The notes beneath the pieces are model-generated. The model was not told where the DNA came from, searched no databases, and saw only the letters and a program-made list of their open reading frames with translations. Shown here piece by piece: positions 1 to 64,000 of a stretch of 64,000 nucleotides of DNA. Both the position numbers and the translations under genes were made by a program. The stretch lies in the sequence record OR670491.1; one strand, given 5' to 3'. The stretch's first letter is position 1. Each line of letters opens with the position of its first letter.

Positions 1-111
1 ATTTTGTGTCGTGATACACTTTTTTATTCTTGTGTGTACTAGTGTAGTATATAAGTTAGTTCCGTTCTTTAAAGATTTGCACAGTAAAATCCGTGCTAAG
101 AAGAGAGGTGA

Positions 112-468
112 GTGATGTTATCATTTGCGGGTCAGATTATCGTCATGGGTATTACATTATTATTCACGGTGAATAGTATTATTTTACTCGGTAAGTACTT
201 TAATATTCGTCCAATGAATAAGTTGTACGATAAATTAAAAGAAGATAATCCATTCTATGTATTTTTATCTGTAGCAATTGGCATAGGTTTCGTTTTAGAA
301 GTTATTGGTTTAATTGCATCTGCACCAGTTGTGATTGTTTTTGGAATCTTTTCTGCTACATGTGGGTTATTATTATTTTCTTTAGGTTTAATACTCGACC
401 TATCGATTAACATTGGTATTAAACTTAAGAAGTTTCATGAAAAGCAACTTCAGAGGGACGTAAAATGA
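112..468 (+). CDS. hypothetical membrane protein
   Basis: ORF with about three hydrophobic segments; GAGG RBS upstream. Confidence 0.75.
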   Translation: MMLSFAGQIIVMGITLLFTVNSIILLGKYFNIRPMNKLYDKLKEDNPFYVFLSVAIGIGFVLEVIGLIASAPVVIVFGIFSATCGLLLFSLGLILDLSINIGIKLKKFHEKQLQRDVK

Positions 469-836
469 CATACCGTGAGTACTTCCTAATTGTTCATATC
501 TTATTTTTTACCGTATTTTCTGTTGTAGGGTTGATGTATTATTTTTGTATTCAACCAGTGTACAATTACTTCCAGAAGACTACTGACACAAAGGTTGTTG
601 GTACAATTGCTGCAATCCTATTATATATGTTGAGTATCCTTCTTATAATTGGTGAAGTATTTTTTGATGGTATGCCAAATTCAGACGGTTTGCTTATTCA
701 TGAGTTTATAACTGGTTTATATTGTTTAGTTGGGTTTATTGCATTTGTGATTTTTACAGTGTACAGGATCTATAAATTTTTCATGTATCTTGGTGGACTA
801 CACGATTCTATTCGTCAGAAACGTATGGGGGAATAA
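465..836 (+). CDS. hypothetical membrane protein
   Basis: ATGA overlap with previous ORF; about three hydrophobic segments. Confidence 0.75.
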   Translation: MTYREYFLIVHILFFTVFSVVGLMYYFCIQPVYNYFQKTTDTKVVGTIAAILLYMLSILLIIGEVFFDGMPNSDGLLIHEFITGLYCLVGFIAFVIFTVYRIYKFFMYLGGLHDSIRQKRMGE

Positions 837-874
837 AAAAATACCCAGTACTGAAATATTGTACTGGGTATTTT
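837..874. terminator. intrinsic terminator (possibly bidirectional)
   Basis: AAAATACCCAGTAC-9 nt-GTACTGGGTATTTT inverted repeat. Confidence 0.8.
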
Positions 875-882
875 AATATATT

Positions 883-1236
883 ATGAGATTCATTAAAGCG
901 AGCTTGCAATCACAAAAGAAATGTCAAATTATAATTGAACACGATGGTTTGAAGATATCAGCATTTGATTTTGGAAGTACTAAACATTCTATTTGCTTTA
1001 ATGATCCTGACAACGCAGTGTATTGTCTTATGATTAAAGTAAACTACTTACATAAACTTATAACAGAACCTGAATATTTTGTTCGTTTCAAAAACTTTAG
1101 TACAGAGAAACTACATGAGATATATAGAATTTCAATGATTGCATATACATTTTTGGGAATACCTGATGATGAACTTGATGTGACATTCCCTGGTGAAGCT
1201 AAAATACCTAAAGAATCATTTTGGAAGGATTTATGA
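883..1236 (+). CDS. hypothetical protein
   Basis: 117 aa ORF in + strand run. Confidence 0.7.
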   Translation: MRFIKASLQSQKKCQIIIEHDGLKISAFDFGSTKHSICFNDPDNAVYCLMIKVNYLHKLITEPEYFVRFKNFSTEKLHEIYRISMIAYTFLGIPDDELDVTFPGEAKIPKESFWKDL

Positions 1237-3362: not shown

Positions 3363-3390
3363 AAAGCCAGTACTTGAGTACTGGCATTAT
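3363..3390 (-). terminator. intrinsic terminator
   Basis: GCCAGTAC-TTGA-GTACTGGC with A-tract on + strand left side. Confidence 0.8.
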
Positions 3391-14347: not shown

Positions 14348-14539
14348 ATGTACGAGCACAAAGAACAGTACTTAAACACTCTACCTAAAGATATACAAAG
14401 AGCATTCCCTTGTGCTCCGTGGGATTTAAACAGTAAATGGGGTTTTATTGAGTTCTATAACGATGTATGTATTGTACTGGAAAGTAAGTCCCTCTCAATG
14501 CAGTACTGTTCAATCTTGAACCTAATTTTTAAGTACTAA
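14348..14539 (+). CDS. family A microprotein
   Basis: EHKEQY; YCSILNLIFKY. Confidence 0.75.
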   Translation: MYEHKEQYLNTLPKDIQRAFPCAPWDLNSKWGFIEFYNDVCIVLESKSLSMQYCSILNLIFKY

Positions 14540-17439: not shown

Positions 17440-18580
17440 TATAGAGAATAGTACAGGATACTAAGGTCTAGATGTGTTCCTAGGGAAGCATTATAACAGG
17501 CTTTAACATCTCGTAAAGATGTTAAAATTCAGCCTGCTCGACGTCTGAATTGTTAAAATTCAGCCTGGACAAATGCGATCACTAGGATTCTATCTAGGCT
17601 GAATCCCGTAATCACAAGTACGCATATGTAATCATATATAAACATTTCCGTGAGAAGTTTTGAGTACTGTATAGTATTAAGAATCACCGTAGGAGCACAG
17701 AATGATTAAGAATGCACGGGAATGATTCAGAATGATTCAGTACTGATATGTCACTAAGTAGGCAGAGGAAGTCTGCCGTACTTTTTAGTTTCCAAGCTCC
17801 TTTTCCATTTTTCAAATTACATCAAATGCAATCAAAAGTAATCACGCAATGATTAGTACTGAATTATTACTTTCACCTTAATTTCAAATACCCGTTGACC
17901 CTTCGGGGTAAAATTCCATTACCCCTTGAGGCTCCAGCAAAAAGTTGGTTAGTACTCCATCCTAAATCTCGATCCTAAAAATTTTGGAGTACCTATGAAA
18001 TAAAAGTTGGATCTTCGAAAGTTGAAATTTACGTTGGGATGATTAGGATTTGTGAACTATAATGTAGTTCAAGTTGGAGTACAGAGTGAGAACAATCTAG
18101 AGTACTGAAAGATGAAATAACATCTTGACAATACAATTCAGTACTGTATAATGTTGTACATAGGGTGAGGGAACGGCGGCAACTGTTCCTTAATCTCAGT
18201 ATCATGTCGTGAGACATTACGCAAGTTATATCCTCCTGTGCATAGTGCTGGTGGTTATCTCTTGAACCTCATTTTTTCTCGTGAACTAAACAGTACTGAT
18301 ATTAACAGAATGGTAGCAGTACTGATATTAATCTAATGCATTATGCCACCAGCTTGTGCTGGTGGATTCCCTCTAACAGTATTCAGTACTACATGATGGT
18401 CTTCATCCTCCTGGGGTAACATAGTGAAGGTTATGATGGCAGTACTGAATACTCCAAACTCAAGATGGATTAAGGGTGTAGTACTGACGGATTTTGGGTG
18501 TAGTTACCCTGGATGGATTTTGGACGTAGATATGTCTAGCCCTCCAGAAGTCTGGAAGTAAAGATGGCTATCCATCTAGA

Positions 18581-18652
18581 CGGCTAAACGGCTAGATTTC
18601 TGGATGGCTGGACGTTTGGACGGCTAAACGGCTAAACGGCTAAACGGCTAAA
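18581..18652. repeat. CGGCTAAA 8-bp tandem repeat
   Basis: four perfect copies 18621-18652, a further copy at 18581. Confidence 0.95.
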
Positions 18653-18849
18653 CGTCTGGATGTATGGATGGCTAAATCAAAATTTTATTTTGTTTTTTCC
18701 AATAGTTCCCCTACCGCGTGGGGATAGTTTCCCCGCAGTATCTGGTGTTAGATTTTTCTGAATCTGGAATCATTATCTTATAAACTGGGGGCAATGTCAA
18801 CGGCCTGGACGGATATTTTTAAAAATTTTTTCAGTACTGAATTTTGGGC

Positions 18850-18925
18850 GTAACTATGCACCCGGTGGGCTTGAGTCTTTCTCGACTTGATGGAACTATT
18901 ATACAGTACTGAAAAAATAAAGCAA
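18850..18925 (-). promoter_or_regulatory. leftward promoter followed by CCCA-GGGTGC element
   Basis: minus strand TTGCTT-16-TATAAT then AAGCCCACCGGGTGCATAGTTAC. Confidence 0.65.
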
Positions 18926-19300
18926 TACCCTGGAAGCAAAAAAGTTTTAATTAATTTGCTTGCTATCCTGGGCCGGACTATGGTACTATATTTCAGTACT
19001 GAGAAAGTGCGTTTACCTGCTAGGGTGCGGGAGTGTATCCTTTTTTTATATCTTGAATTTTGGACGGATCTTCCCACCCCCTGGGGTATCCGCTTTCTCG
19101 CGTCTATGTAGTAATTATACGCTTTTTCAGGATCAAGTCAATACCTAAAAACAAAATAATTGAAAATAATTTAACGCGTTTAAACGGCCCGTAACGCCCT
19201 GGAATGATTAGAATGGTGCAAATGTATAGCTTAGGTGTATTAATGCGTTAGAATGCGTCTGAGGCCGTTTTATGGGGTGTAGTAGTGATTTGGTTGATTC

Positions 19301-19465
19301 AGTACTGAATAATAGTACTCCTATATAGAAAGATAGTTCCCCTGGATTGATTCAGTACTGAATGATAGTACTGAATAATAGTACTCCTATATAGAAAGAT
19401 AGTTCCCCTGGATTGATTCAGTACTGAATGATAGTACTGAATAATAGTTCCCCTATATAGAAAGA
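19301..19465. repeat. 66-bp tandem repeat, about 2.5 copies
   Basis: units start at 19301, 19367, 19433; first two units carry three AGTACT each. Confidence 0.9.
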
Positions 19466-19579
19466 AAACTATTTTAAAAGTATTTGTAGAAAGTACTTGC
19501 ACAGTACTGATAAAAGCGTATAATGTTTTACATCGAGAGCGGGAACTCTTCCCGCTACACTTTAAGAGAGATTAATACG

Positions 19580-19942
19580 ATGGCGACTCAAATCACTAAA
19601 ATCATTGCTAACCTGGTTAACTTCCGCGACGATATGAAAGATCTTCCGGCGGCAACGGTTAAAACTCACATTGACGCATACCGCGAACTGATTAAAATGC
19701 TGCCGCTTAAGCGTGAACAATACGCCGCCACCGTGATGCTTGATGCGATGATCCATAAGATGATCGCCAGTGATTTAACGATGGCTTATCAGTATATGGG
19801 TGAATTGTTCGCGGTGTATAGTAAACCAGTACCAGGAATGGAAAGTACAGAAGTATTACACGGTTTAAATTTAAAACAAGATGCATGGGATAATATGCCT
19901 CGTTTCCTGGTATGGGCTGACAGTGGCAAAATTTACGAATAA
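19580..19942 (+). CDS. hypothetical protein
   Basis: ATG 19580 behind promoter/stem-loop cassette. Confidence 0.75.
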   Translation: MATQITKIIANLVNFRDDMKDLPAATVKTHIDAYRELIKMLPLKREQYAATVMLDAMIHKMIASDLTMAYQYMGELFAVYSKPVPGMESTEVLHGLNLKQDAWDNMPRFLVWADSGKIYE

Positions 19943-20034
19943 GTTAAAAATTAGTTTGACAGTACTGAATAAAAGCGTATAATGTTTTACATCAGGTGGG
20001 GAATAGTTCCCCACTATATAAGAGGATTAAAAAA

Positions 20035-20274
20035 ATGGCTAAATCAAAAATGTTCTTAGGTCACAAAAATAAAACTCATTGGAATGTAAGCCTTTGGATT
20101 AATAACGATGAGGGATTGTATCGGTTGGCCCAGGACTTTATTAACGATAGCACTAATCGCAATGATGCGGCCCGTCATATGATGTTATTTTTAGAACAGA
20201 CTGGACAAGATAAAACACCGGACGGATTCAAATATAGCACTACTGCGATCCGTGCGGCAATGGTAGGAATGTAA
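20035..20274 (+). CDS. hypothetical protein, paralog of 22076..22315
   Basis: GHKNKTHWNVSLWINN ... TPDGFKYSTTAIRAAMVGM shared. Confidence 0.8.
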   Translation: MAKSKMFLGHKNKTHWNVSLWINNDEGLYRLAQDFINDSTNRNDAARHMMLFLEQTGQDKTPDGFKYSTTAIRAAMVGM

Positions 20275-20360
20275 TAGAATATATTTAAAGTACTATCATT
20301 TTTTTGCGATAGTACTTTATAATAGTGTTTTATTCATACACCAACGATAAGGGCAACAGC

Positions 20361-20627
20361 ATGAATATTAAGTATTTTGCGACGCGTGAACAAGCTCGGA
20401 TCGCCGCTCGCCAGGACGGGGCAACGTTTAAAGATATGGGCGTACAATCGGAACGTGGTAAACGTTGGGCCATTGTAAAGCGTAGTACCGCCAGATCATT
20501 ACAGTACTGGTTAGCGGCCTTAAAAAGTCCCGATAGTGTATCGCGTCGAGTGGTAGAAATAAAGCTCGACCGAAAGGGCAACCGCGTGACCGTGTACCGT
20601 ACTAAAAAGATAGCAGTACTTGAATAA
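20361..20627 (+). CDS. hypothetical protein, paralog of 32821..33225
   Basis: FATREQAR...FKDMG...GKRWA...DRKGNRVTVY shared. Confidence 0.8.
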   Translation: MNIKYFATREQARIAARQDGATFKDMGVQSERGKRWAIVKRSTARSLQYWLAALKSPDSVSRRVVEIKLDRKGNRVTVYRTKKIAVLE

Positions 20628-20714
20628 AAAGTACTTGCAAACTATGTTTAATGGCGTATAATGTTTTACATCGAGAGCGGGAACTCTTCCCGCCTATAAC
20701 CTGGAGTAATAAAA

Positions 20715-20945
20715 ATGACTAATATGTATATGACTGAAGTTAAAACCGTAAAAGATACTACCACGAATAAAACTACTTACTTACAGCGGATCTGCGGTGT
20801 ATGGCAACGTATCAGCAAATCAAAGTACTTTAAATTAACATCATATGCAAATCGTTCGGATTCATTCAGTACTGAAATAAAAGGTAATAAAGTACACCAA
20901 TACGGCACTTATTATTATTACAGCCTGGACGCGATTGCAGTATAA
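20715..20945 (+). CDS. hypothetical protein
   Basis: own promoter cassette, GGAG RBS. Confidence 0.7.
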   Translation: MTNMYMTEVKTVKDTTTNKTTYLQRICGVWQRISKSKYFKLTSYANRSDSFSTEIKGNKVHQYGTYYYYSLDAIAV

Positions 20946-20975
20946 GCAGTTTACAAATCTTTACAATTGCCGGTA

Positions 20976-21056
20976 TTGACTTATTTTGTCAGTACTGGCA
21001 TAATGTATTCATTGGCAGATAAGCCGTAGCCCATAGGGTGCGGGAGTGTATCTATA
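20976..21056 (+). ncRNA. orphan promoter + CCCA-GGGTGC element (candidate short ncRNA or operator)
   Basis: TTGACT-17-CATAAT then TAGCCCATAGGGTGCGGGAGTGTATCTAT; no ORF. Confidence 0.4.
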
Positions 21057-21071
21057 GAAAAATTAGTTTAG

Positions 21072-21148
21072 TATAGTTACAATTGTGCACCCGGTGGGTT
21101 AGCTGTTGTCATGGGGTATATTATGCCAGTACTTGATAATTCTGTCAA
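21072..21148 (-). ncRNA. orphan leftward promoter + CCCA-GGGTGC element
   Basis: minus strand TTGACA-17-CATAAT then CTAACCCACCGGGTGCACAATTGTAACTAT; converges on previous unit. Confidence 0.4.
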
Positions 21149-21230
21149 TACTTTTTTTTTACTATTCAGTACTGAAAACTATTTTTAAAAAGTACTTGCA
21201 AACTATGTTTAAAGGCGTATAATGTTTTAC

Positions 21231-21305: not shown

Positions 21306-21373
21306 AAAATAGTTTGACAAATGTTTTTAAAAGCGTATAATACTTACATCAACTACTGAATGAGGGTTACAAA

Positions 21374-44238: not shown

Positions 44239-44434
44239 AAACATAGATCCCAATCAGTACGCAACAATGTACAGAGATTATTGGATGCAAAGTTCCAGTA
44301 CCAAGTCCCTTGCGGAATTTCGTATGATATATTTTCTTGGTACAGAGAATCAAGAAGAAACGATGCTGGACTATATTGAAGTACTAAAGGTTGAAGTACA
44401 AGATGAATACATATTAGGGGTTATGGAGCAGTGA
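44231..44434 (+). CDS. family B protein
   Basis: LGTENQE. Confidence 0.7.
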   Translation: MFRNIDPNQYATMYRDYWMQSSSTKSLAEFRMIYFLGTENQEETMLDYIEVLKVEVQDEYILGVMEQ

Positions 44435-44925
44435 AATCGAGATTCGTTTCAGAGTTCAGTACAGACACGGTGTACGCTAAGGATTTAGTACAGTTATTAA
44501 TTTCATTGCTCAAGGCTAAGGATAATTCAGAAGTTCAAGATTTGTGTAGTTCTTGTATCCGATATGCAGGTGGTAATTTGTATATTAATATAGATGGATT
44601 AGATCGTCCTATATATAAACAATCAAAATTCATCCAAAGTTGGACATACATTGATTTTGATAGTACATATTCGGCGTACACAAAAAGAAGTACAAAAACC
44701 TTTTTTACAATCCAGGGTAAAACGTATAATTTATTAAAAGAGCCATTAACAGAAGAAATGTATTTCCAGATGCAATGCTTAGGATTAAGTACAGAAGCGT
44801 TAAATGCTTATGTGCTTATTGATGCTATGGATTATTTAGATTTAGATAAGTACGTTCCAGACGGATGGAGAATGTCTTTACCTTCGTTATTTGCAGTGTA
44901 CAATACAATACATGGGGAACCTTAA
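44431..44925 (+). CDS. family C protein
   Basis: EEMYFQMQCL. Confidence 0.7.
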   Translation: MKSRFVSEFSTDTVYAKDLVQLLISLLKAKDNSEVQDLCSSCIRYAGGNLYINIDGLDRPIYKQSKFIQSWTYIDFDSTYSAYTKRSTKTFFTIQGKTYNLLKEPLTEEMYFQMQCLGLSTEALNAYVLIDAMDYLDLDKYVPDGWRMSLPSLFAVYNTIHGEP

Positions 44926-45436
44926 AGTGAATTTTAATGTAATTGATGTTCCTGAATTAGCAAAGAAGATTCAAACAATCCTGTACATAGGTAGTTCAAT
45001 ACGAAGTACAGGTGATTTCATCAGGACAGATAAAGTAAGAATGCAAGGTATGCGTTCATCATATGATGTTAAAGGTATGTGTACATTTGATATGGTCTAT
45101 ACAAAATACGGAAAGGAAAAGAATGCAGTATGTTTATTATCGTTTCCACCGAACCCTATAGCACCGAGAAATCCTAACAATACATTATGGTACGAGCAAG
45201 GTGCAGATACAGTAGAGTTCAAGGGTGTATTTTATGATGTAGAAGATATTCCAGCAACAGAAGAAGGAGCATTCCAGTACAGCTTATTATATCCAGATGA
45301 TGTAATATTTTATAAGAAGTTATTTTGGGAGTTAAACAATTTACCTCATTACACCCCTAATTTTTCAATAGATCTGGAGTGCATTGATACCGTATACGAA
45401 AGTTTAATGGAGTTCATTAGTTATGAAGTACAGTAA
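44912..45436 (+). CDS. family C protein
   Basis: EEGAFQYSLLY. Confidence 0.75.
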   Translation: MGNLKVNFNVIDVPELAKKIQTILYIGSSIRSTGDFIRTDKVRMQGMRSSYDVKGMCTFDMVYTKYGKEKNAVCLLSFPPNPIAPRNPNNTLWYEQGADTVEFKGVFYDVEDIPATEEGAFQYSLLYPDDVIFYKKLFWELNNLPHYTPNFSIDLECIDTVYESLMEFISYEVQ

Positions 45437-46004
45437 CCCAGAAGAGACAGTATTTGAGTACACATATGAAAATGCTGTAGAGCTTTGTACAAAATTAAAA
45501 GAAGTCCTTCAAATTTACAATTCCATTGTAAATGACCCAAAGAATAAAGATAAAAATGTAATCCAATTAAATGCATTTTGTTCCATAAACATAGCAAAAG
45601 ACCATTCAGAATTACAGGTCCGTAAAACACAAGATAACGAGGACAAATTCAGATTCATCAGGAATTATCCAATATCAGATGTATTATCATATCTTAGTTT
45701 TCCACCTGGTCCTTGTTTGAGTAAAGAAGATACGGATTCATTTTGGTATAATAGTACATTCCAGTACATGGGTATTAATAACAAGGGTTCAGATGCAACG
45801 GACAGGATTGAAGTGAATCAAAGTCCTAAAAGTGCAGAGGAATTCTTTCAGTACAGTACCCTTATGCATCCAAGAACAATTTTTTATTCATGCGTTTTAG
45901 ATGCTTTGAAGAGTTCAGGTTTAGATTTACCGCATTTACGTTTCAACCCACAGAGCATTCCTAGTGTGTGGGAAATGTTAAAGAACGAGCCGCCTGTGTC
46001 GTAA
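45423..46004 (+). CDS. family C protein
   Basis: EEFFQYSTLM. Confidence 0.8.
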   Translation: MKYSNPEETVFEYTYENAVELCTKLKEVLQIYNSIVNDPKNKDKNVIQLNAFCSINIAKDHSELQVRKTQDNEDKFRFIRNYPISDVLSYLSFPPGPCLSKEDTDSFWYNSTFQYMGINNKGSDATDRIEVNQSPKSAEEFFQYSTLMHPRTIFYSCVLDALKSSGLDLPHLRFNPQSIPSVWEMLKNEPPVS

Positions 46005-46020
46005 GATACGGGCTTTTTTT
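45992..46020 (+). terminator. intrinsic terminator
   Basis: GCCTGTGTC-GTAA-GATACGGGC + T7. Confidence 0.8.
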
Positions 46021-46023
46021 GTA

Positions 46024-46052
46024 TTGACAAAAGCAAAAGTACCAAGTACAAT
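46024..46052 (+). promoter_or_regulatory. sigma70-type promoter
   Basis: TTGACA-17-TACAAT. Confidence 0.8.
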
Positions 46053-46080
46053 ACAGATATATTAATAAAAGGAACATACC

Positions 46081-46647
46081 ATGCAACCAGTACAACCAGT
46101 ACAACCAGTACCTAAAGTGCCTAAAGTGCATCTAGTAGCCGATTTCGAAGTACCACAAACGTTCGAAGAGTGCAATGCGTACATCGACAAGGTGCTTTGT
46201 ATTTTCAAGGCATTCATTGAAGATGACATTCCATCCTTTGATTACGAACATCCCAGCCAAGGGTACGCAAACATGTACACAAGGAATAACATGAGTGGTA
46301 TTATTCCTCACATCACGAGTACAACGTTTTGGTACACAGATAGTTCAAAGAAATCAAAAGATTTCCTTGTACGCGATTTGAATTTAAACGAACCTTCATC
46401 AGTACCTATGCTGTTTGAGCCTATTCAATCCAAAGAAGAGTATTTTCAGTACAGCACCTTGTATACAGCATTTGAGTTATTTTGTATTCAGATGTACGCA
46501 AGAACAAATGCTTATATTAAAGATAATCCAATCAATTTCAAAAGTGCCAAGATTGTCCATCCTGTATTTGCTGATTTATATGATTCAGTGTATTCAGGTA
46601 AAAAGCCAAAGTACACCACAACAGCGTATAGAGCGTTTCGTCCTTAA
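46081..46647 (+). CDS. family C protein
   Basis: EEYFQYSTLY; N-terminal QPV/PKV micro-repeats. Confidence 0.8.
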   Translation: MQPVQPVQPVPKVPKVHLVADFEVPQTFEECNAYIDKVLCIFKAFIEDDIPSFDYEHPSQGYANMYTRNNMSGIIPHITSTTFWYTDSSKKSKDFLVRDLNLNEPSSVPMLFEPIQSKEEYFQYSTLYTAFELFCIQMYARTNAYIKDNPINFKSAKIVHPVFADLYDSVYSGKKPKYTTTAYRAFRP

Positions 46648-46656
46648 GGAGCTATA

Positions 46657-47268
46657 ATGAGTTACATGAGTTCGCACAGATTATTAGATGTGTTAAAGGA
46701 GCATCTTGTTTTCCTTCAGGACAAGTTACGTTCCTTTTCAGAGACATTCCCGGAGGGTAGTAAGTTGGTAGTTCCTTTTCGTGCACCCAATGTGAATGAC
46801 CAGTTCATAGTACACATCAGTACAGATAATATTTCGTTGCGTATTATCAATTCAGATTTAGATTTATTCGGTGTAAGATTCAATACAAAACAAACGGTAT
46901 CGAGTTCGTCCCTGAACAAATGGGATTTTTGTATTGCTCACCCTAATAAAGCTGAAGAGATTTGGATACAAATCAGTGCAGATGGTCATGAGAGATCGCA
47001 TTTTGCGTATTATCCTAAAACAGATAAGTTCCCAGAATCAGTGTATTACAAGAGAACAGATTATGAAACATTGGATTCATTTTTGTTCCAGCAGCAGATG
47101 TTTGAAGGCGTAAGAAATCAAGATGAAATCCAGAAGGACATTGATACAATCCTTGATATCCAAAGTTATCTTGATGAAGACATGTACGTATATCATGGTA
47201 ATTCAGTTATTTTTGAAAATGTATTACCGTCCTTTATCAATGCATTACAAGATATTAAGGTGTTTTAA
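46657..47268 (+). CDS. family C-like protein
   Basis: DSFLFQQQMF. Confidence 0.7.
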   Translation: MSYMSSHRLLDVLKEHLVFLQDKLRSFSETFPEGSKLVVPFRAPNVNDQFIVHISTDNISLRIINSDLDLFGVRFNTKQTVSSSSLNKWDFCIAHPNKAEEIWIQISADGHERSHFAYYPKTDKFPESVYYKRTDYETLDSFLFQQQMFEGVRNQDEIQKDIDTILDIQSYLDEDMYVYHGNSVIFENVLPSFINALQDIKVF

Positions 47269-47501
47269 TGATTTTATTCAATACAGGTCCGTGTTCCTTA
47301 GAAGTGATGTTTTCAAGAAATCGTTTATGGAATCAAAAATTCAGGGACGATACGTTGTTTCACAGGATGGTACAAACCTTCGAAAACGAGAAAGAAGAAG
47401 AATACATACACAGAATCATGTACATAGCAGTCCTCAGTACACCTGAATATTACGAGCGTTTGAGAGCGTTCAATTCCACAATACCAAAGGAGCCTAAGTG
47501 A
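47268..47501 (+). CDS. hypothetical protein
   Basis: TAATG overlap. Confidence 0.55.
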   Translation: MILFNTGPCSLEVMFSRNRLWNQKFRDDTLFHRMVQTFENEKEEEYIHRIMYIAVLSTPEYYERLRAFNSTIPKEPK

Positions 47502-47899
47502 CAACCATGAAACCAGTACCGTTAAGATATCAATTTTGTGCTTACGCAGTGCAAATGTACAGTTCAGAAGGTATATGTCAATACGAGTTTGATATTGAGT
47601 CACAGGAGACGAATGAAGAGGTGTACACGGTACGTTACCTTTACGGGAAGTACACCTTCGCTATCAAAGACAAGCACAGAAACATATCCCCTGTTCCTAA
47701 TTTTGTACACGAACCGGAGTTGGAGTTCCAGTACAGCACCTTAAGAGATGACATTCCTGTGCACAAGAAGATGCAGGATGTGCTGATAAAGTTCGTAGAA
47801 TGTGTTATGGCGGTTGACAATTACCCGAATATCCTGTACATTACCTTTGATAGTTACGAAATCTTAGAAGATATGTTCGAGGGATGGGAATTATGTTAA
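47498..47899 (+). CDS. family C protein, short type
   Basis: ELEFQYSTLRD. Confidence 0.75.
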   Translation: MTTMKPVPLRYQFCAYAVQMYSSEGICQYEFDIESQETNEEVYTVRYLYGKYTFAIKDKHRNISPVPNFVHEPELEFQYSTLRDDIPVHKKMQDVLIKFVECVMAVDNYPNILYITFDSYEILEDMFEGWELC

Positions 47900-48087
47900 G
47901 TGAAAATCAGACCAAAATAATTGACAGGATGGTATCCCTGCATATCAGTCAGTACCTTTATGATTCCAGAAGAGGTATTGATACATGGGACATTACAATG
48001 CAATGCATCAGGCTTTTTTATTCGGATTTTAATAATGGATTAAAATGGCTCCAAGAGAGAAAAGATGAGAAAGTACACCAGACATGA
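47884..48087 (+). CDS. hypothetical protein
   Basis: ORF in + strand run. Confidence 0.55.
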   Translation: MGIMLSENQTKIIDRMVSLHISQYLYDSRRGIDTWDITMQCIRLFYSDFNNGLKWLQERKDEKVHQT

Positions 48088-48265
48088 GTTTATAGTAGAA
48101 ATTCAGGAAGTATTTCAGAGGTGGAAAGCCTTGGGTTTAGAGAATTTTCCGTATCAGGATTTTAAATTATTACATTTTTGGGGTAGTAATATGCAGGACG
48201 CTGTATTAAAAGAGTACCTAAAAGAGATGCAGTACAAGATACAGTACAAGAAGGAACAACAATGA
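48065..48265 (+). CDS. family B-like protein
   Basis: WGSNMQD followed by EYLKEM helix. Confidence 0.65.
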   Translation: MRKYTRHEFIVEIQEVFQRWKALGLENFPYQDFKLLHFWGSNMQDAVLKEYLKEMQYKIQYKKEQQ

Positions 48266-48486
48266 GTCCAAATCCAAGTCATGAAGTTGCATTTGATTCG
48301 AGTATAGTACATTTAGTTGTAGAAATGGTTAATGAAGATTTCAAACATGAAATTAACAAAGACCGATGGGAAATGCTTTTGGAGTTCATATTACAAAACA
48401 TCAGGTCGTATTGGACGGAGGCAGTACGAGAAGAGATGTTTTGGAGGGGTGAAATTCAAATGATAAATAACGGCATTTTGGAATAA
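48262..48486 (+). CDS. hypothetical protein
   Basis: ATGA overlap, AAGGA RBS. Confidence 0.6.
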   Translation: MSPNPSHEVAFDSSIVHLVVEMVNEDFKHEINKDRWEMLLEFILQNIRSYWTEAVREEMFWRGEIQMINNGILE

Positions 48487-48690
48487 CATGAGGGGGCGGT
48501 TTTACAGGCCGATGTTTTAGGGGTCAAAAAAATTTCCGCTTTAACAAGGTGGAGATTATCTTTTATATATCCTGTTAGAATTGTGCATAAGCGTAGAAGG
48601 AATTTTCGAAAAAGAAAAAAAGACGCGACGCAGGCACGATTCGGGCTGGGAATATATTTCTTTATCTTGTATTTTAATTTGGAGTTCATT

Positions 48691-49035
48691 ATGGATTTTG
48701 ATTATTCGATTTACAGTATAAAGTACCATGATTCTTTTGAATTGTATTGTAATCTTGTAAAGGGTGATAGCAAGCACGATTGTGAGCAATTCCTGCGATA
48801 CGATGGGAAACAATTTCATTTCTATGATTACTGTACTGGAGATAAAGAAGAAGTACCAGATTATACGGGGCTGGATGATGCAGAACTATTTCAGGCTAGA
48901 CTTGTATTTGATTCGAGATTAGTTTGCAGTATTGAAGAGATGATTCCTTTACAACAGGAATTAAAAGAACATTCCGAAAAGAAAGTCCAGTACGGATATG
49001 ATCATCGTTATTACTTTAATCTAGAGGATAAGTAA
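48691..49035 (+). CDS. family C protein, short type
   Basis: ELFQARLVFD; ATG 48691 behind GGAG. Confidence 0.75.
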   Translation: MDFDYSIYSIKYHDSFELYCNLVKGDSKHDCEQFLRYDGKQFHFYDYCTGDKEEVPDYTGLDDAELFQARLVFDSRLVCSIEEMIPLQQELKEHSEKKVQYGYDHRYYFNLEDK

Positions 49036-49511
49036 TGAGTTTAGAAAGTGCACTGGAATTAGGTCGAAGGATAGTTCCTATTATTAATTTCTACCAAAAG
49101 AATTTATATAAGCTAGGATACTTCAATGATGAAATCCTGACTCCAGAAGAACTGGAGTTGGGATACATGTGTATGTTAGCCTTTGGTCAGTATCATACTA
49201 GTGGTGATTGTGATATGAACCTTAGTGGTGGATATCTTGATTTCGAAAGGAATAGTGCACTCCAATTCGTAGACAGAAATGGTTCAGTACAACGTATTGA
49301 ACCGGAAGAGTTTAAAGAATTTAGTACTATGACAGAGGATATGTATTTCCAGTTAAGTACTCTTTACAGTTCAGAAGCACTTGATGCAATGATACTTTTT
49401 GATTACTTATATGGCAGTGATGTTCCTAACTTCGTGTATCTAAGTCTTACTCGCTTGGATATTCTGGAAGAATTATATGAACAGGATTTATTAAAACAGG
49501 TACATATGTAA
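49035..49511 (+). CDS. family C protein, long type
   Basis: EDMYFQLSTLYS. Confidence 0.8.
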   Translation: MSLESALELGRRIVPIINFYQKNLYKLGYFNDEILTPEELELGYMCMLAFGQYHTSGDCDMNLSGGYLDFERNSALQFVDRNGSVQRIEPEEFKEFSTMTEDMYFQLSTLYSSEALDAMILFDYLYGSDVPNFVYLSLTRLDILEELYEQDLLKQVHM

Positions 49512-50303: not shown

Positions 50304-50783
50304 GTGTCATTTGAAAGTGCCTTTATGGAAGCCCAACGAATCCATGAGTACATGATTCGTATTATTAATGATGATAATCCAAATATAACAAAGTACTGTG
50401 ATGCATCATGGACTGAGTACTACCTATGTACACCAGCACAAAAAAATTACATGTTGGATTCAAATACTCGTATTCTACATTTATGCCCTGGTAGTAATCA
50501 CTTCTACTGTTGTCGTACAGCAGAGCACAGTACTATGGAGTTCAGTAGGAGTAGTCCTATTATTTTTTATAACTGGAATGTAGAGGGTTCTAACTATACT
50601 GACTGTACACACCAGATAGATGCAGAAGTACTGGATGAGCCGTGGGATTCTTCTGATTATTATTTTCAGATGAGCACTGTGTACGAAGAAGATGTACTTG
50701 ACACTTTAGTACTGATGTGGTACTTTAAGCACAGAACAGATTATCCAGATTTCTATCTGGAGTACTTCCACGACATAGGCTAA
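50304..50783 (+). CDS. family C protein, long type
   Basis: DYYFQMSTVYE. Confidence 0.8.
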   Translation: MSFESAFMEAQRIHEYMIRIINDDNPNITKYCDASWTEYYLCTPAQKNYMLDSNTRILHLCPGSNHFYCCRTAEHSTMEFSRSSPIIFYNWNVEGSNYTDCTHQIDAEVLDEPWDSSDYYFQMSTVYEEDVLDTLVLMWYFKHRTDYPDFYLEYFHDIG

Positions 50784-50792
50784 GAGGATTAT

Positions 50793-51341
50793 ATGGATTA
50801 CACATTTAATGGTTTAGAGTACAGGCACTGTATTGCAATGGCTAAAGTACTGGAGTACGTTGTTACCAGATTGCAATGCAATGAATTTCTTAAGCGAAAT
50901 ATCTTATATCTAAATTCCGATGGTTACTTGTGCCATATTAATGATTTTGTTGACTTTGGTTGGGGCGTTCGTATTGACAAAGATACCATATCAAGAGCCG
51001 GATGCAGGGGTGCAGTTCTTACGCACTGTATTTGTTTTTCTCCTGATAGTAGATCTGTTATTATCAATCACGACAGTCAAAAATATTTTCTGGGTCTGGA
51101 CAATGGAGATTTGGAAGCGTGGTTCTTCCAGAACATTTTAGTACTTGAACCTATGAAAGTACTATATATGGTAGTGTTTAATTATTTGTACAACATTAAA
51201 TGCATAGATTCATTTGATATAGAAATGAGTCTTATGCGTATTATCAATCAAATACCTGAACTCCAGCGTATTACAGAAGAACCGTACTTCAACGATTTCA
51301 CAGAATTATATCGTATGCACAGCTTTGAAGGAGATGAATAA
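50793..51341 (+). CDS. family C-like protein
   Basis: AWFFQNILVL. Confidence 0.7.
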   Translation: MDYTFNGLEYRHCIAMAKVLEYVVTRLQCNEFLKRNILYLNSDGYLCHINDFVDFGWGVRIDKDTISRAGCRGAVLTHCICFSPDSRSVIINHDSQKYFLGLDNGDLEAWFFQNILVLEPMKVLYMVVFNYLYNIKCIDSFDIEMSLMRIINQIPELQRITEEPYFNDFTELYRMHSFEGDE

Positions 51342-61189: not shown

Positions 61190-61745
61190 TATACTCTGTA
61201 AAATTAGTTCTGCACTTCATAAAGTTGGTACTAAGTACGATATCCCTGGTGAGAAAGATAAGTGGATTGATATTGAGGATGTGTACCGTATCGTAATCAG
61301 TCCTAGTACTGAATACACGTATAACATCTGTAGTATCAATACCATTAACTACAACCCAAGAATGGGTCTTCAACACATCATCATTGCATCCTATGTAGGT
61401 ACTAGCAGAGTTTATACTGATAACATTGGATACTATAGTCCGCATATGTTTTCTATACGTTGTGCAAGGGACAACCAAATAGCAGCGGTTGAATTGTATA
61501 ATGAGACTGAGTACGCGAATGAAGTGATGGATATCCCAGTTGATCTTCAAAACTTAAAAGAGCGAGAATCTTCATGGTTCCAGTACTCTTTACTTGACAA
61601 CTACAAGATTTATGATACTATGTGCTTAATGTACGATGTGAACAAGATTTTACCTAAAGGGGAAATCTTAATGTACGAGGCATTTGTTAATCTCAAAGAT
61701 GAAGAACTCCAAAAAATTTACGAGGAATTAATCAAACATGTCTAA
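61176..61745 (+). CDS. family C protein
   Basis: ESSWFQYSLLD. Confidence 0.8.
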   Translation: MLNRDILCKISSALHKVGTKYDIPGEKDKWIDIEDVYRIVISPSTEYTYNICSINTINYNPRMGLQHIIIASYVGTSRVYTDNIGYYSPHMFSIRCARDNQIAAVELYNETEYANEVMDIPVDLQNLKERESSWFQYSLLDNYKIYDTMCLMYDVNKILPKGEILMYEAFVNLKDEELQKIYEELIKHV

Positions 61746-62316
61746 CATCATTGATGCTATTCAAAATCCAAATCACAAAATTCTGTGCAATATCATTGCT
61801 GATATGAAGCAGCATTTGATTAAAATGAAAAACACAGATACACCTGTGAACTTCAACAAACAATTACAGCACGGGTTGAACTTGAGCTTAAAGTTGAAGC
61901 AGAAGATGACATATGATAATTACATCTTGAACGCAGGTGGTCCGCGTGCTATTGTATTTGTCAATAACGGTTTCAGTACTGATGCGGTGCATGATATCAA
62001 TGTTGACCATTACATCAATAATAGAAATTTCGTTGTTATTGATGCACCATGTGATAAAGTTGTACTTACTACGGATACAGGATACCGTAAAGTTAAAATT
62101 CTTCGCAGTACGGATGACGTACAAGGTAAAGTCTTTCAGATGATTACCGTTGAAGATACCGACAGTATTGATGCATTATTACTGGTATCAGCTTTACACG
62201 AACTAATTATTGGTAGTGCAATGAAATTGATTATTGATATTGATACCGTCAATAAATTATCAATTGACTCTCTACAGAAAGTACACGAAACTGTACAGGG
62301 ATTACTTAATGAATAA
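61738..62316 (+). CDS. family C protein
   Basis: KVFQMITVED. Confidence 0.7.
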   Translation: MSNIIDAIQNPNHKILCNIIADMKQHLIKMKNTDTPVNFNKQLQHGLNLSLKLKQKMTYDNYILNAGGPRAIVFVNNGFSTDAVHDINVDHYINNRNFVVIDAPCDKVVLTTDTGYRKVKILRSTDDVQGKVFQMITVEDTDSIDALLLVSALHELIIGSAMKLIIDIDTVNKLSIDSLQKVHETVQGLLNE

Positions 62317-62857
62317 TTTTCAAAATATGTACGACATGTGTAAGATTATGTCAAATTTCAGTACTAAGATTAAATCGGCTCCAGTAGCGGAAGTTCACAT
62401 GTCCGAACGCTACTACACGTTCCGAGTATCCAGTACTGGTGACAGTATTCGACTGTTCTTAAATGACCGACAGCAATTGTTTGATGTAGTCATTGTAGAC
62501 CATACTACAAAGGGAAAATATGCATACAATATGTATGCAAAAAATCGTTGGTTAGTAATTCGTAATACAATGCAACGATTACGTGCAGCTACAGATATAA
62601 ACAGTACTGGTGATGATTACGATATTACTAACATTTTAGATGAATCTGTTTTTAATTTTGAAATAGATTTATCTGTTGATGATCCATTCCTGCGTGACCT
62701 TTACAAATTACACGGGTGCGTTGTTCGTGGTACACAAGATATCAAAGCTGTGTCAATTGAGGTATCCAGAATTCATGAACACAATGTGAACCTGGAATCA
62801 TTGATTGATAAGATGAATACCAATTTCTTCTTTTGGAAGTGTAAGGATGAACTATGA
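62309..62857 (+). CDS. hypothetical protein (possibly degenerate family C)
   Basis: ATG 62309 overlaps previous stop. Confidence 0.7.
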   Translation: MNNFQNMYDMCKIMSNFSTKIKSAPVAEVHMSERYYTFRVSSTGDSIRLFLNDRQQLFDVVIVDHTTKGKYAYNMYAKNRWLVIRNTMQRLRAATDINSTGDDYDITNILDESVFNFEIDLSVDDPFLRDLYKLHGCVVRGTQDIKAVSIEVSRIHEHNVNLESLIDKMNTNFFFWKCKDEL

Positions 62858-63306
62858 CACGCGATGAGTGTATCCTATTATGTAAAGTTGTAGAGAAGAT
62901 CTTAAGTGATCCTTCTCTTGAAAATAGTAAAGTACTGAAAAATAAAACACGCAGGTCGTGGACTGATATTGCACTTGTAAGTGATGATATCAATGTTGGA
63001 ACTTTGTGGCCTTCGAGAACATATACACTAACAAGTGCAATACACGAAGAAAGTGTAGATTATGTAGGTGAGAAAACTTTCATCTACGGTAGTACTACAC
63101 CAGTAATGCATATCATTGATTTAGTTGATATGGATGACTTTGATTCGTTATATCTTCAGTACTCTTCGACATATAATACTGAATTAATTTATCAATTGGT
63201 TCTTATTTCGAGGATTAGTTATTTGATTAAAAATAACAATGATTATTCTTCGCTTTCACTTACGTTCGAATTACTACCTTATGCAGAGGAATTCTTAAAT
63301 GAGTAA
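62854..63306 (+). CDS. family C-like protein
   Basis: DSLYLQYSSTY. Confidence 0.75.
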   Translation: MTRDECILLCKVVEKILSDPSLENSKVLKNKTRRSWTDIALVSDDINVGTLWPSRTYTLTSAIHEESVDYVGEKTFIYGSTTPVMHIIDLVDMDDFDSLYLQYSSTYNTELIYQLVLISRISYLIKNNNDYSSLSLTFELLPYAEEFLNE

Positions 63307-63784
63307 TATCAGTGCACAAGATTACGTTAAGATTTACAATTTCATGAATAGCTTCTTTGGTCCTGAAACTAAAGAAGTACAACTAACTAAGAACTTACAG
63401 TTAGGTGTATACAGTAATACTTATGTAGGTATTAAGAATACATCAAGTACCACTGAATTTAATACAGATATGTTTCGTATTATCCGTAATACACATAATC
63501 GTGAAATTAGTACATTAACACCTAATACAATGATAGCTGAACCTCCGACGAAAAATATCAATGTTATCACATTCAATTCAGATAATGTCGTTGAGATTCC
63601 AGAATTTACTTCATTTGATGAATTACAGTTTCAGTTGAGTACTCTATATAAAAATGAAAGTATCCTGACATTCTTATCATATCTTAATAGTATTAATAAT
63701 AATTATGTGGTTTATTTTGGTTCAATCCAGTCTATTAGTATTACACAGGAATTAATTGATTACATTGATAGTCTGGAGGAATAA
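63299..63784 (+). CDS. family C protein
   Basis: ELQFQLSTLY. Confidence 0.8.
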   Translation: MSNISAQDYVKIYNFMNSFFGPETKEVQLTKNLQLGVYSNTYVGIKNTSSTTEFNTDMFRIIRNTHNREISTLTPNTMIAEPPTKNINVITFNSDNVVEIPEFTSFDELQFQLSTLYKNESILTFLSYLNSINNNYVVYFGSIQSISITQELIDYIDSLEE

Positions 63785-64000
63785 TGGAACTCAATTTCAG
63801 TACTTTACTAAAGTTCATCCATCCAGTACTTTGGGTACTAAAGAATAGAAAATCAGAACATGATACTGTTCAGTACAGTAATGATTACTACAGTATATTG
63901 TGCGGGGTTTATGCTGATGGTGGTTCCATTATTATGGAGTACAAAGAAGCTAGTGCAAGGGGAACCAATCTAAGAATCGAATTACGTCTACCACTGTACG
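63784..64000 (+). CDS. hypothetical protein, partial (runs off window)
   Basis: ATG 63784 behind GGAGG; open to window end. Confidence 0.6.
   Translation, partial: MELNFSTLLKFIHPVLWVLKNRKSEHDTVQYSNDYYSILCGVYADGGSIIMEYKEASARGTNLRIELRLPLY

Follow-up and report, generated by a model that had tools for sequence, protein, structure and literature searches.

The palindrome AGTACT is highly over-represented in RaK2-like jumbo phages and may be the site of a symmetric DNA-binding protein

AGTACT behaves like a recognition site on double-stranded DNA that is selected throughout the genome, a reading supported by its sequence context: the flanks show symmetry, coding copies fall in each of the three reading frames, amino-acid usage is biased toward it and its sites are conserved above background. 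The window (the whole stretch of 64,000 nucleotides that was analysed) originates from an Asteriusvirus, a RaK2-like jumbo coliphage, and spans the terminal repeat. As claimed in the first-pass annotation, AGTACT is strongly over-represented, with 307 copies observed and 22.28 ± 4.75 expected from dinucleotide-preserving shuffles (n = 100). The largest count in any shuffle was 34, and 0 of the 100 reached 307. AGTACT ranks first among all hexamers of the window and is the sole clearly enriched palindrome, the runner-up reaching just 1.9x; at least 14 other 6-bp palindromes are at zero copies in the same genome. The phage holds around 1000 selected AGTACT copies while most other 6-bp palindromes are purged, and on a composition basis the hexamer is enriched ~9–14-fold instead of under-represented as under restriction avoidance. 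Enrichment is stronger in intergenic than in coding DNA (Table 1). The six copies annotated in 50401–51000 and the nine in 19301–19508 were both confirmed by recounting, the latter lying within a 66-bp tandem repeat of 2.5 copies, an array whose copy number differs among strains.

Table 1. Features of the window that carry, or lack, AGTACT (positions are those of the window)
Feature	Position	Strand	Details
AGTACT sites, whole window	1..64000		307 sites: 197 fully coding (3.7/kb), 108 fully intergenic (10.2/kb), 2 gene-edge
Terminator hairpin	3366..3385	-	GCC-AGTACT-CA-AGTACT-GGC + T-run, between RCC1-like paralogues
Sister terminator cassettes	~4621-4640, 6037-6056, 9785-9804, 11037-11055		Same hairpin type as 3366..3385
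AAGTACTAA, AGTACT overlapping the stop codon of a small-gene family	14531..14539	+	Also at 16361, 16550, 17156
Equivalent of the ~21-kb direct terminal repeat (DTR), approximate	17835..38830	+	fEgEco12 position 1 maps to ~17,835
Nine AGTACT in 208 bp	19301..19508		66-bp unit x2.5, immediately before the first promoter and gene of the DTR (19523-19942)
Double-site early promoter	22637..22669	+	AGTACT over the -35 box (AGTAC-TTGCAA), second abutting the -10 box (AGTACT-G-TATAAT), 20 bp apart
Double-site promoters	23422-23454; 26985-27017		Same layout as 22637..22669
Single-site promoter AGTACTGTATAAT	28044..28056	+	Offset -7
AGTACT-free accessory island	44400..49322	+	0 sites in ~4.9 kb
Six coding-region AGTACT	50416..50851	+	Within 50401-51000

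Codon usage is not the source of the excess. Synonymous shuffling of the window yields 46.6 ± 6.1 coding copies, compared to 198 observed, and the signal survives the codon-pair correction that the first-pass annotation had named as a refuting test. Coding sites are spread over all three reading frames (80/60/57), and amino-acid usage itself is bent toward the hexamer. The dipeptide ST is written as AGTACT in 80 of 156 cases, with 23 expected, and the dipeptides ST, VL, QY and EY are inflated, the reversed pairs not. Genome-wide, 829 of 1733 AGTACT-capable peptide contexts (48%) are filled, with a near-uniform occupancy over early, replication and structural genes.

The consensus of the site is TTC-AGTACT-GAA, with reverse-complement symmetric flanks. 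At positions -1/+1 in fEgEco12, the pair C/G is found at 7.2x and G/C, the most depleted flank pair, at 0.2x, while the TTC half-flank reaches 7.4x. Such symmetric, graded flanks are typical for a dimeric binder. An oriented motif of the Chi or KOPS type was rejected because of this symmetry. Information content falls to ~0 beyond ±4 bp of the core, so a mobile repeat (MITE- or REP-like) was rejected as well. The E. coli gyrase motif is described as extensive (~130 bp) and degenerate (PMC6379681), and a strong gyrase site was rejected because AGTACT is a strict hexamer.

All four genera sampled in the RaK2-like clade show the excess, with 1115 copies observed vs 116.5 expected in fEgEco12, 119 vs 12 in RaK2, 253 vs 13.8 in GAP32 and 86 vs 12.2 in Erwinia phage pEa_SNUABM_12. 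When compared to phage 121Q, 104 of 120 sites (86.7%) are conserved, against 59.4% for other hexamers. Conservation exceeds the background in coding and intergenic DNA alike, and intergenic sites (88.9% vs 63.6%) lie well above the neighbouring spacer sequence. Across genera, 32.5% of sites are conserved vs ~14.5%. Turnover is balanced (6 gains, 9 losses), and density is equal between genera despite a positional turnover of ~70%. Judged from these alignments, AGTACT sites are under purifying selection. Phage DNA carries 3–7 copies per kb and host DNA ~0.06–0.1 per kb, a 50–100x difference, and 50 kb of E. coli K-12 was not enriched (3 copies vs 4.8 expected). The island at 44400..49322 was found in just 2 of ~85 Asteriusvirus records.

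The placement of the sites is also non-uniform. Density is highest, at ~6.7/kb, in the DTR region, where ~60 small early genes are each served by a sigma70-like promoter of their own. Fixed promoter positions, overlapping the -35 box or directly before the -10 box, had been proposed and are indeed found: relative to the -10 box, AGTACT lies at -7/-8 in 19 promoters, at -17 in five and at -27 in nine, and it is confined to these offsets in 36 of the 52 promoters of the window. The composite strings AAAAGTACTTGCA, AGTACTGTATAAT, GCCAGTAC and GTACTGGC occur 12, 11, 10 and 18 times in the window, respectively. In Cronobacter phage GAP32, promoters carry the hexamer at -7/-8 and at -27 to -29, often both in one promoter. 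In both genera, promoter sites all abut a -35 or -10 box and the free mid-spacer is empty; the palindrome lies over core promoter elements and is kept there in relatives, as in an operator. The annotated sites in left-arm terminator stems (GCC-AGTACT-NN-AGTACT-GGC, then a T-run) and over the stops of small gene family A were verified too. Pairs 11 or 20–22 bp apart, suggested to lie on one helical face, hold for the double-site promoters, and distances of 11 and 20 bp each occur five times in the window with ~1.5 expected per distance. This does not extend to the whole genome, where spacing is Poisson-like (75 gaps of ≤30 bp vs 77.6 expected). Many close pairs lie in promoter or terminator cassettes that have been duplicated, so these sites are not independent events.

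We tentatively favour, with a little less than even confidence, the reading that AGTACT is read by one twofold-symmetric DNA-binding protein, marking native phage DNA and serving as an operator at early promoters. Protein binding and its effect are what we infer here from enrichment, selection on the sites, flank symmetry, promoter positions and phylogenetic distribution, all directly observed. AGTACT would be the invariant core of a ~12-bp palindrome, TTC-AGTACT-GAA, bound on double-stranded DNA. Selection would keep native phage DNA saturated, with about half of the synonymous opportunities, the terminator stems and the promoter flanks being filled, and the resulting contrast in density with the host would let the hexamer mark phage DNA densely. 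In the DTR early region of the jumbo phages, it may be positioned as an operator: measured from the predicted transcription start, site centres would lie at about -36.5, -26.5 and -16.5, spaced by one helical turn and all within the stretch that RNA polymerase covers, so that occupancy would shut off or modulate sigma70 early transcription. Two roles suggested in the first-pass annotation are consistent with this picture, the silencing of early promoters with sites inside the promoter core in two genera and the marking of self DNA with the density difference from the host. Several points weigh against the model. Around 1000 sites per genome in many replicating copies would need a very abundant protein, a protein bound inside genes could obstruct transcription, and some of the intergenic pattern would follow from opportunistic placement in free sequence, with no regulatory role involved.

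An unrelated low-GC prophage lineage, found in Leclercia and Serratia, has the same motif and flank preferences. The Leclercia prophage, with its IS removed, carries 141 copies vs 10.2 expected, with flank ratios of 8.7x for C/G, 0 for G/C and 7.6x for TTC. In the assembled stretch, all 142 copies lie in the prophage, whose ISL3 gene has 0, as have the host flanks on either side; 20.5 kb of Leclercia host flank was not enriched (2 copies vs 1.8 expected). The immunity region of the prophage holds a single AGTACT without an operator-like arrangement, so the operator role may be specific to the jumbo phages, or secondary. The only protein common to both AGTACT-rich lineages is a lysozyme, leaving no shared candidate reader gene, and none of the ten larger DTR proteins tested has a recognisable DNA-binding domain. 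A conserved Enterobacterales host protein is considered about as likely as a phage-borne protein for the putative reader, because the unrelated prophage shares motif and flanks but no candidate gene. Thus, of the proposal that AGTACT is a genome-wide site for a phage-encoded protein, the selected genome-wide site stands, whereas the phage origin of the protein does not follow. It is conceivable, although we regard it as rather doubtful, that low-GC phages of Enterobacterales with no relation to each other, virulent jumbo myoviruses on one side and temperate prophages of the siphovirus type on the other, became saturated independently via the same putative reader, a conserved host protein or small mobile phage gene, making TTCAGTACTGAA a cross-lineage signature of phage DNA.

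Another, unlikely, explanation is that AGTACT is the target of a DNA-modifying enzyme, the modification marking self or shielding from ScaI-type restriction. The rV5-like coliphage VEcB has purged the hexamer completely (0 vs 45.6 expected), suggesting a real AGTACT restriction pressure in the host pool against which phages with ~1000 sites would need protection. In the Leclercia prophage, a cluster of six sites is followed immediately downstream by the gene for a 266-aa SAM-dependent methyltransferase-like protein. GAP32_519, which carries the annotation putative N6-adenine methyltransferase, is closely homologous to this protein, and the jumbo phages also encode C5 and Dam-family methyltransferases. 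However, protection neutralises sites, leaving a 10–14-fold enrichment and an amino-acid bias unexplained, and a type II methyltransferase would not usually have a target with graded preferences in its flanks. When the prophage, GAP32, Asteriusvirus, RaK2 and rV5-like phages were compared, no cognate methyltransferase was co-distributed with AGTACT: neither Asteriusvirus nor RaK2 has the family that the prophage and GAP32 share, which is the only one common to the two lineages, and members of it do occur in rV5-like phages, from a group in which the phage sampled lacks AGTACT. The RaK2 C5 methyltransferase is reported to methylate CpG, and Dam, Dcm, CpG and EcoKI methylation are the only types named where the digestion of RaK2 DNA is described. 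The earlier suggestion of a modifying protein is thus left with no matching enzyme in the window's genus. Digests of fEgEco12 DNA used ten enzymes, all other than ScaI.

It is also quite unlikely that only density matters, i.e. that AGTACT has a genome-wide function such as the recruitment or attenuation of a host enzyme, comparable to the action of Chi on RecBCD, and that promoter and terminator sites are cost-free fits for a palindrome without regulatory meaning. The uniform coding occupancy over gene classes, the Poisson-like spacing and the turnover of ~70% of positions between genera at constant density would all agree with this. Terminator stems take AGTACT where any palindrome would serve, and the prophage lineage has the genome-wide layer, not the promoter layout. 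Chi itself is co-enriched in the terminal repeat. The promoter sites argue against density alone, as they avoid the free mid-spacer and abut a -35 or -10 box in two genera, and so do intergenic sites, being conserved well above the adjoining spacer. The host chromosome is not enriched, unlike for Chi, and we know of no host enzyme with AGTACT specificity.

Three further explanations are each highly improbable. The phage could hijack the host nucleoid-occlusion factor SlmA, activating this FtsZ antagonist on phage DNA and blocking division. The SlmA site GTGAGTACTCAC has the same AGTACT core, cells infected by the close relative Sharanji filament with phage DNA filling the cell, and a host protein could in principle be the reader shared by unrelated lineages. 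Like SlmA-binding sites (SBS) and Noc sites, AGTACT sites are palindromes dispersed over a genome; SBS and Noc sites measure 12–14 bp and are recognised by dimeric HTH proteins. In E. coli, SBS number in the tens, not in the thousands. SlmA depends on G1 and T2, a purine at position 3, and A4 and G5 of the half-site GTRAGY (PMC3020112). The phage consensus has T at position 1 (T2 fits) and a strong C preference at position 3; as positions 1 and 3 both fail, the flanks are incompatible with the published SlmA specificity and SBS membership was rejected. In addition, the pair G-AGTACT-C stands at 0.2x in fEgEco12 and at 0 in the Leclercia prophage, and 899 of 977 sites have 4–6 mismatches across the six flank positions.

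The excess is equally hard to accept as a non-functional by-product of codon-pair bias, mutational bias or biased repair of the very-short-patch type. An order-4 Markov model does predict 264 of the 307 copies and the phage encodes a C5 methyltransferase, but the fit is circular because it is the hexamer that raises the counts of the pentamers AGTAC (461 in the window) and GTACT (407). Intergenic enrichment exceeds coding enrichment, three frames are used, synonymous shuffling yields 47 and not 198, and sites are conserved above background. Host flanks and the prophage-internal IS are bare though replicated in the same cell. A scan of neighbours with one mismatch showed no depletion, which speaks against a repair or mutational drive. 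Among transition precursors, AATACT/AGTATT stand at 1.2–1.4x, GGTACT/AGTACC at 1.5–2.6x and AGCACT/AGTGCT at 1.5–1.8x. With none of these depleted, a VSP-type drive (CCWGG-like) was rejected; no Vsr-like gene or domain was found near the C5 methyltransferase. Reading in RNA as AGUACU, e.g. by a ribonuclease or RNA-binding protein, is just as implausible: the palindrome appears in the transcript from either strand and most sites are transcribed because nearly all genes lie on one strand, yet the flanks are reverse-complement symmetric despite unidirectional transcription and many sites lie upstream of the predicted transcription starts, in the -35 to -10 region.

Returning to a symmetric DNA-binding reader, AGTACT resembles several known systems in part. 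As with USS in Pasteurellaceae and DUS in Neisseria, a short motif occurs at about one per kb or more genome-wide, in all coding frames with a peptide bias and as inverted pairs in terminators, its density being kept while positions turn over. USS and DUS lie in bacterial chromosomes, are 9–12 nt long and non-palindromic, and are recognised by competence proteins in DNA uptake, whereas AGTACT is a 6-bp palindrome of phage DNA only, with no uptake step. Chi (GCTGGTGG) is likewise an over-represented oligomer labelling DNA as own for a DNA-processing enzyme, RecBCD. It lacks symmetry, depends on orientation and is over-represented in the host chromosome; AGTACT is symmetric and shows no excess in host DNA. 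Stoperators of cluster A mycobacteriophages (L5 gp71) are repressor sites spread over the phage genome beyond the main operator, a likeness in the many genome-wide copies. They number ~25–35, are 13-bp, asymmetric and intergenic, and are oriented with transcription; the ~1000 AGTACT are palindromic, mostly within genes and, in the prophage lineage, not an immunity operator. ScaI-type restriction-modification shares the identical hexamer, which VEcB purges like a restriction site. Unlike such targets, AGTACT is enriched with graded flanks, not avoided or neutralised, and no AGTACT-specific enzyme was identified in Asteriusvirus.

Phages are expected to shed short palindromes. Here, ~1000 copies of one are maintained at a measurable protein-sequence cost, and their upkeep in jumbo phages and an unrelated prophage implies a strong, unrecognised selective agent acting on the phage DNA of Enterobacterales. 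AGTACT offers a simple computational marker to separate native from recently acquired DNA in these phages. If the hexamer is unmodified, an extreme sensitivity to ScaI-type restriction is predicted, which bears on the host range of therapeutic jumbo phages. Identifying the reader could uncover how non-nucleus-forming jumbo phages without base hypermodification discriminate self from host DNA or, alternatively, an early-gene switch-off or a host factor on which phages depend. Were the cross-lineage signature true, it would be a new host-phage interface in which sequence density, not chemical modification, separates phage from host DNA, and it would explain the two camps of phages, those in which AGTACT is purged completely and those saturated with it.

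The window matches Escherichia phage vB_EcoM_JNE01 at 99.8–100% identity in a similarity search, placing it in the genus Asteriusvirus, i.e. the 121Q/PBECO4/G17 group of RaK2-like jumbo myoviruses. A comparison with the Asteriusvirus phage fEgEco12, for which a direct terminal repeat (DTR) of 20,993 bp was confirmed experimentally, divides the window into three parts, as listed in the table. The left part contains nine paralogous genes of ~360–450 aa each, whose homologues in relatives are annotated as RCC1-like 'chromosome condensation regulators', and in every one an AGTACT-pair terminator precedes a T4-late-like TAAATA promoter as part of the same cassette. A 1.7-kb stretch without genes, immediately inside the genome's physical left end, holds a block of short repeats that could be a packaging or replication signal. 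The first similarity search also returned local nucleotide matches between rV5-like phages and the early region.

Features of the window and their coordinates
Feature	Window position	Strand	Basis
RCC1-like paralogue array	~2.1–13.4 kb	minus	fEgEco12 comparison
Nine paralogous genes	2114–13382	minus	
DTR-equivalent early region, ~60 small genes	~17.8–38.8 kb		fEgEco12 comparison
Unique region	after DTR equivalent		fEgEco12 comparison
Chi (GCTGGTGG)	18247, 18358, 24645, 28851, 29361, 30311, 31559, 33913, 35810, 37387, 37611	+	
Chi (GCTGGTGG)	18346, 24583	complement	
Inverted pair of the two Chi orientations	18346–18365		
Tandem (ACGGCTAA)n and 16/48-bp repeats, many CAGTACTGA sites adjoining	18576–18676		
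G/C-rich hairpins in 5' UTRs (e.g. GGGGAGAAATGATTCTCCCC)	19.9–38 kb		
-10 hexamers of the four GGGATTGACTCCGGTCAGTCCCTTTGCTATTATATA promoters	27483, 31501, 34776, 37526		
Accessory island, ~4.9 kb, ~15 genes	44400–49322		

AGTACT is present 307 times in the window against 22.3 ± 4.8 in dinucleotide-preserving shuffles and ranks first among all hexamers, with other palindromes reaching at most 1.9 times expectation. Every specific AGTACT count in the first-pass annotation, which had proposed the palindrome as the site of a phage nucleoid, repressor or modifying protein, was reproduced. An order-4 Markov model predicts 264 copies, a fit that is circular because the hexamer itself accounts for 307 of 461 AGTAC and 307 of 407 GTACT pentamers. 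The sites are denser in intergenic DNA (n = 108, 10.2/kb) than in coding DNA (n = 197, 3.7/kb), where they fall in all three reading frames (80, 60 and 57). Synonymous-codon shuffling, which keeps every protein and the overall codon usage, leaves 46.6 ± 6.1 sites (largest 66) compared with 198 observed in coding DNA, so the signal survives the codon-pair correction that the same annotation had listed as a potential refutation. Of 156 Ser-Thr dipeptides, 80 use AGTACT, with 23 expected. Moreover, the dipeptides ST, VL, QY and EY are over-used, unlike the inverse orders TS and LV, indicating that protein sequences have been bent by the DNA motif. The shuffling result, together with sites in every frame and their greater density between genes, led to the rejection of a codon or codon-pair explanation; both artefact and codon bias are disfavoured by direct tests.

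The excess extends over the complete fEgEco12 genome, with 1115 copies against 117 expected and enrichment in all 10-kb bins (11–75 copies, ~3 expected). AGTACT occupies 829 of the 1733 peptide contexts synonymously capable of carrying it (48%), a fraction that is nearly uniform (0.40–0.57) over early, replication and structural genes. Above this uniform coding layer, the intergenic DNA of the DTR and the RCC1-like gene arm reaches 11–12 sites/kb. The hexamer is also ranked first in Klebsiella phage RaK2 (119 vs 12 expected), Erwinia phage pEa_SNUABM_12 (86 vs 12.2) and Cronobacter phage GAP32 (253 vs 13.8), which belong to other RaK2-like genera. In the distant relative Pseudomonas phage PA5oct it is depleted (1 vs 10.2 expected), and the count in Agrobacterium phage Atu_ph07 is unremarkable. 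PA5oct shows a mild excess of CTGCAG, TCTGCA and TGCAGA at 100–135 kb, which might represent an analogous motif of different specificity; with CTGCAG at only 15 vs 3.2 expected and inconsistent flanks, this candidate was set aside.

fEgEco12 is devoid of at least 14 palindromic hexamers, among them CCATGG, CTGCAG and GCATGC (50, 43 and 44 expected, respectively), as well as ACCGGT and CGTACG. The opposite extreme in AGTACT content is the rV5-like coliphage VEcB (Justusliebigvirus, OZ035773.1), with no copy in 148,885 bp against 45.6 expected. Hence, approximately 1000 AGTACT copies are kept in the jumbo phage despite strong restriction avoidance.

The flanks of AGTACT are graded and reverse-complement symmetric, with the consensus TTC-AGTACT-GAA. 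C at -1 together with G at +1 occurs at 7.2 times expectation, the opposite G/C pair at 0.2 times and the half-flank TTC at 7.4 times. Under unidirectional transcription, such symmetry argues for duplex-DNA recognition by a putative twofold-symmetric reader, i.e. a protein recognising AGTACT, rather than for an RNA signal. Information content is gone beyond ~4 bp from the core, so AGTACT is not a mobile repeat. Genome-wide spacing is Poisson-like, and a LexA-box reading, with two sites 18 bp apart, was rejected since this distance is not enriched.

Of 120 sites aligned with 121Q (88.6% identity), 104 are conserved (86.7%), whereas all other hexamers together reach 59.4%; the gap is seen in both coding (85% vs 57%) and intergenic DNA (89% vs 64%). 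With 121Q as outgroup, six gains and nine losses were counted, indicating equilibrium. Between genera (~67% nucleotide identity), 32.5% and 24–28% of the coding sites are positionally conserved, with controls at ~14.5%. As site numbers are still equal (80 vs 80; 65 vs 75), AGTACT density is maintained through turnover.

IMG/VR was scanned for paired extended AGTACT sites and the many AGTACT-rich contigs retrieved were clustered, yielding two independent lineages: the RaK2-like jumbo phages and a group of low-GC siphovirus-type prophages marked by a GpA terminase, a lambda-family portal and a protease-capsid fusion. One member, a Serratia proteamaculans prophage (GC 0.38), has 69 sites against 5.9 expected. 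Another was recovered whole from the clinical Leclercia chromosome CP046445.1 (~1,811,000–1,845,600); it is complete, has 42% GC, is bounded by a large serine recombinase and carries an inserted ISL3. All 142 AGTACT of the assembled stretch lie within the ~34.5-kb prophage region, with none in either host flank or in the ISL3 gene, and the prophage without the IS holds 141 against 10.2 expected. The empty chromosomal site of other strains has two copies in 20.5 kb (1.8 expected), and a 50-kb sample of E. coli K-12 has three. It is thus the phage DNA that is enriched, and neither the host genome nor the mutational environment there is the source. The AGTACT-free accessory island of the window, found only in JNE01 and Turkey5 among ~85 Asteriusvirus records and probably recently acquired, and the bare ISL3 are natural controls: young DNA that does not yet carry the mark.

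The flank statistics of the Leclercia prophage match those of the jumbo phages (C/G 8.7 times, G/C 0, TTC 7.6 times), indicating one and the same specificity in both lineages. Much the same palindromes are purged from this prophage as from the unrelated fEgEco12, which points to a shared restriction landscape. Its early genes encode an HNH-like protein, a YonV/ResIII-type helicase, a DUF2971 protein and a methyltransferase related to GAP32_519 of phage GAP32; this is evidence of gene flow between the two AGTACT-rich lineages. An apparent third lineage (L071) proved to be a false positive caused by a 24-bp tandem repeat within one gene. Escherichia phage DCP80 (PQ671644.1) was considered as a cultured relative and dismissed, as its siphovirus-like module is not enriched. 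The record appears chimeric, with a siphovirus-type head/tail module (1 to ~26 kb) joined to the T4-like genes motA, ndd and rIIA, the last annotated twice.

In the DTR, most small genes are served by a sigma70-like promoter of their own. AGTACT lies inside the promoter in 36 of 52 promoter-like sites, although duplicated cassettes among promoters and terminators mean that such raw counts overstate independent events. Measured from the first base of the -10 hexamer, AGTACT takes only three offsets, one helical turn apart: -7/-8 in 19 promoters (AGTACT-G-TATAAT), -17 in five (TTGAC-AGTACT) and -27 in nine (AGTAC-TTGCAA). No AGTACT occurs in the free mid-spacer of the window promoters. The same classes (-7/-8 and -27 to -29) recur in GAP32, a different genus with diverged promoter sequences, where a single promoter often has the two sites, 20–22 bp apart. 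Relative to the transcription start, the offsets place the site centres near -36.5, -26.5 and -16.5, which is within the polymerase footprint and where a repressor operator would be expected. In the left arm, the terminators are hairpins of the form GCC-AGTACT-NN-AGTACT-GGC.

Other elements were noted in the early region. A near-identical strong promoter without AGTACT (GGGATTGACTCCGGTCAGTCCCTTTGCTATTATATA) is found in four cassettes of ~110 bp, each with a conserved non-coding stretch of ~60–100 nt (CATTGAGAGATAGCTCACTAGCCCACAGGGTGCA...) downstream, and a similar promoter exists in GAP32 (at ~19398 of the stretch analysed). The cassettes may constitute a small RNA family; an Rfam scan of the window, including these cassettes, gave no match. 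In most early genes, a G/C-rich hairpin between promoter and Shine-Dalgarno could act as an RNA stabiliser or attenuator. Chi is concentrated in the terminal repeat: each 21-kb DTR of fEgEco12 has 10 same-orientation copies, with ~2 expected in the whole 375-kb genome. Chi action on RecBCD is polar, and the orientation in the DTR is compatible with attenuation of a RecBCD that enters from the right end of the genome.

These findings call for a selective agent that acts on duplex phage DNA and is strong, sustained, sequence-specific and twofold-symmetric. They would be explained most economically by a single dimeric DNA-binding protein that reads TTCAGTACTGAA, of which TTCAGTTCTGAA is an example core-mutant counterpart. 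A purely density-based function of AGTACT and a modification-based mark at the site are both live rivals to this dimeric reader. Regarding modification, the 266-aa Leclercia prophage protein is a member of a SAM-dependent methyltransferase family, and protein P0004 is 53% identical to it and matches GAP32_519 at 87%. Both a profile search and tblastn for this family were negative in Asteriusvirus and RaK2, and it is present in rV5-like phages, of which the sampled member VEcB lacks AGTACT; therefore, it cannot be the common reader. The C5 methyltransferase was likewise rejected, since that of RaK2 is reported to methylate CpG and close orthologues occur in only ~54 of ~87 RaK2-like records. 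The other jumbo-phage enzyme found is a Dam-family methyltransferase.

Lysozyme is the sole protein detectably common to the jumbo-phage and prophage lineages, and none of the ten DTR and eight prophage early proteins compared with Pfam gave a recognisable DNA-binding domain. A role as prophage immunity operator was rejected: the switch region contains a single site, and the CI-like and Cro-like genes lack it. The host factor SlmA has the core AGTACT in common with the phage site and infected cells filament, but SlmA binding depends on G1, T2 and a purine at position 3 (PMC3020112) and the phage flanks are the opposite at positions 1 and 3. The published gyrase motif is long and degenerate (PMC6379681). 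A very-short-patch-type conversion drive is excluded because the one-mismatch neighbours of AGTACT are all mildly enriched and none is depleted; nor is there a Vsr-like gene near the C5 methyltransferase. Repair drive, SlmA and gyrase are disfavoured by direct tests.

The motif is unmentioned in the searchable literature on RaK2, CBB, Sharanji and fEgEco12 and in a restriction-site-avoidance survey, and a literature search on palindrome over-representation found nothing. Genome-wide over-represented recognition motifs are already known, such as Chi, uptake sequences, stoperators and SlmA- and Noc-binding sites. A strict palindromic hexamer at 3–7/kb that unrelated phages have in common amid palindrome purging, such as AGTACT, corresponds to none of these.

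In the proposed mechanism, the candidate dimeric reader would recognise TTCAGTACTGAA on phage DNA, and saturation with AGTACT gives a 50–100-fold density contrast between phage and host DNA. The identical specificity in two lineages without a common candidate gene, together with the restriction of the trait to Enterobacterales phages, suggests that the reader may be a host protein. In the jumbo phages, the same site would have been co-opted as an operator of early promoters, and its conserved, operator-like position there suggests that the phage controls timing.
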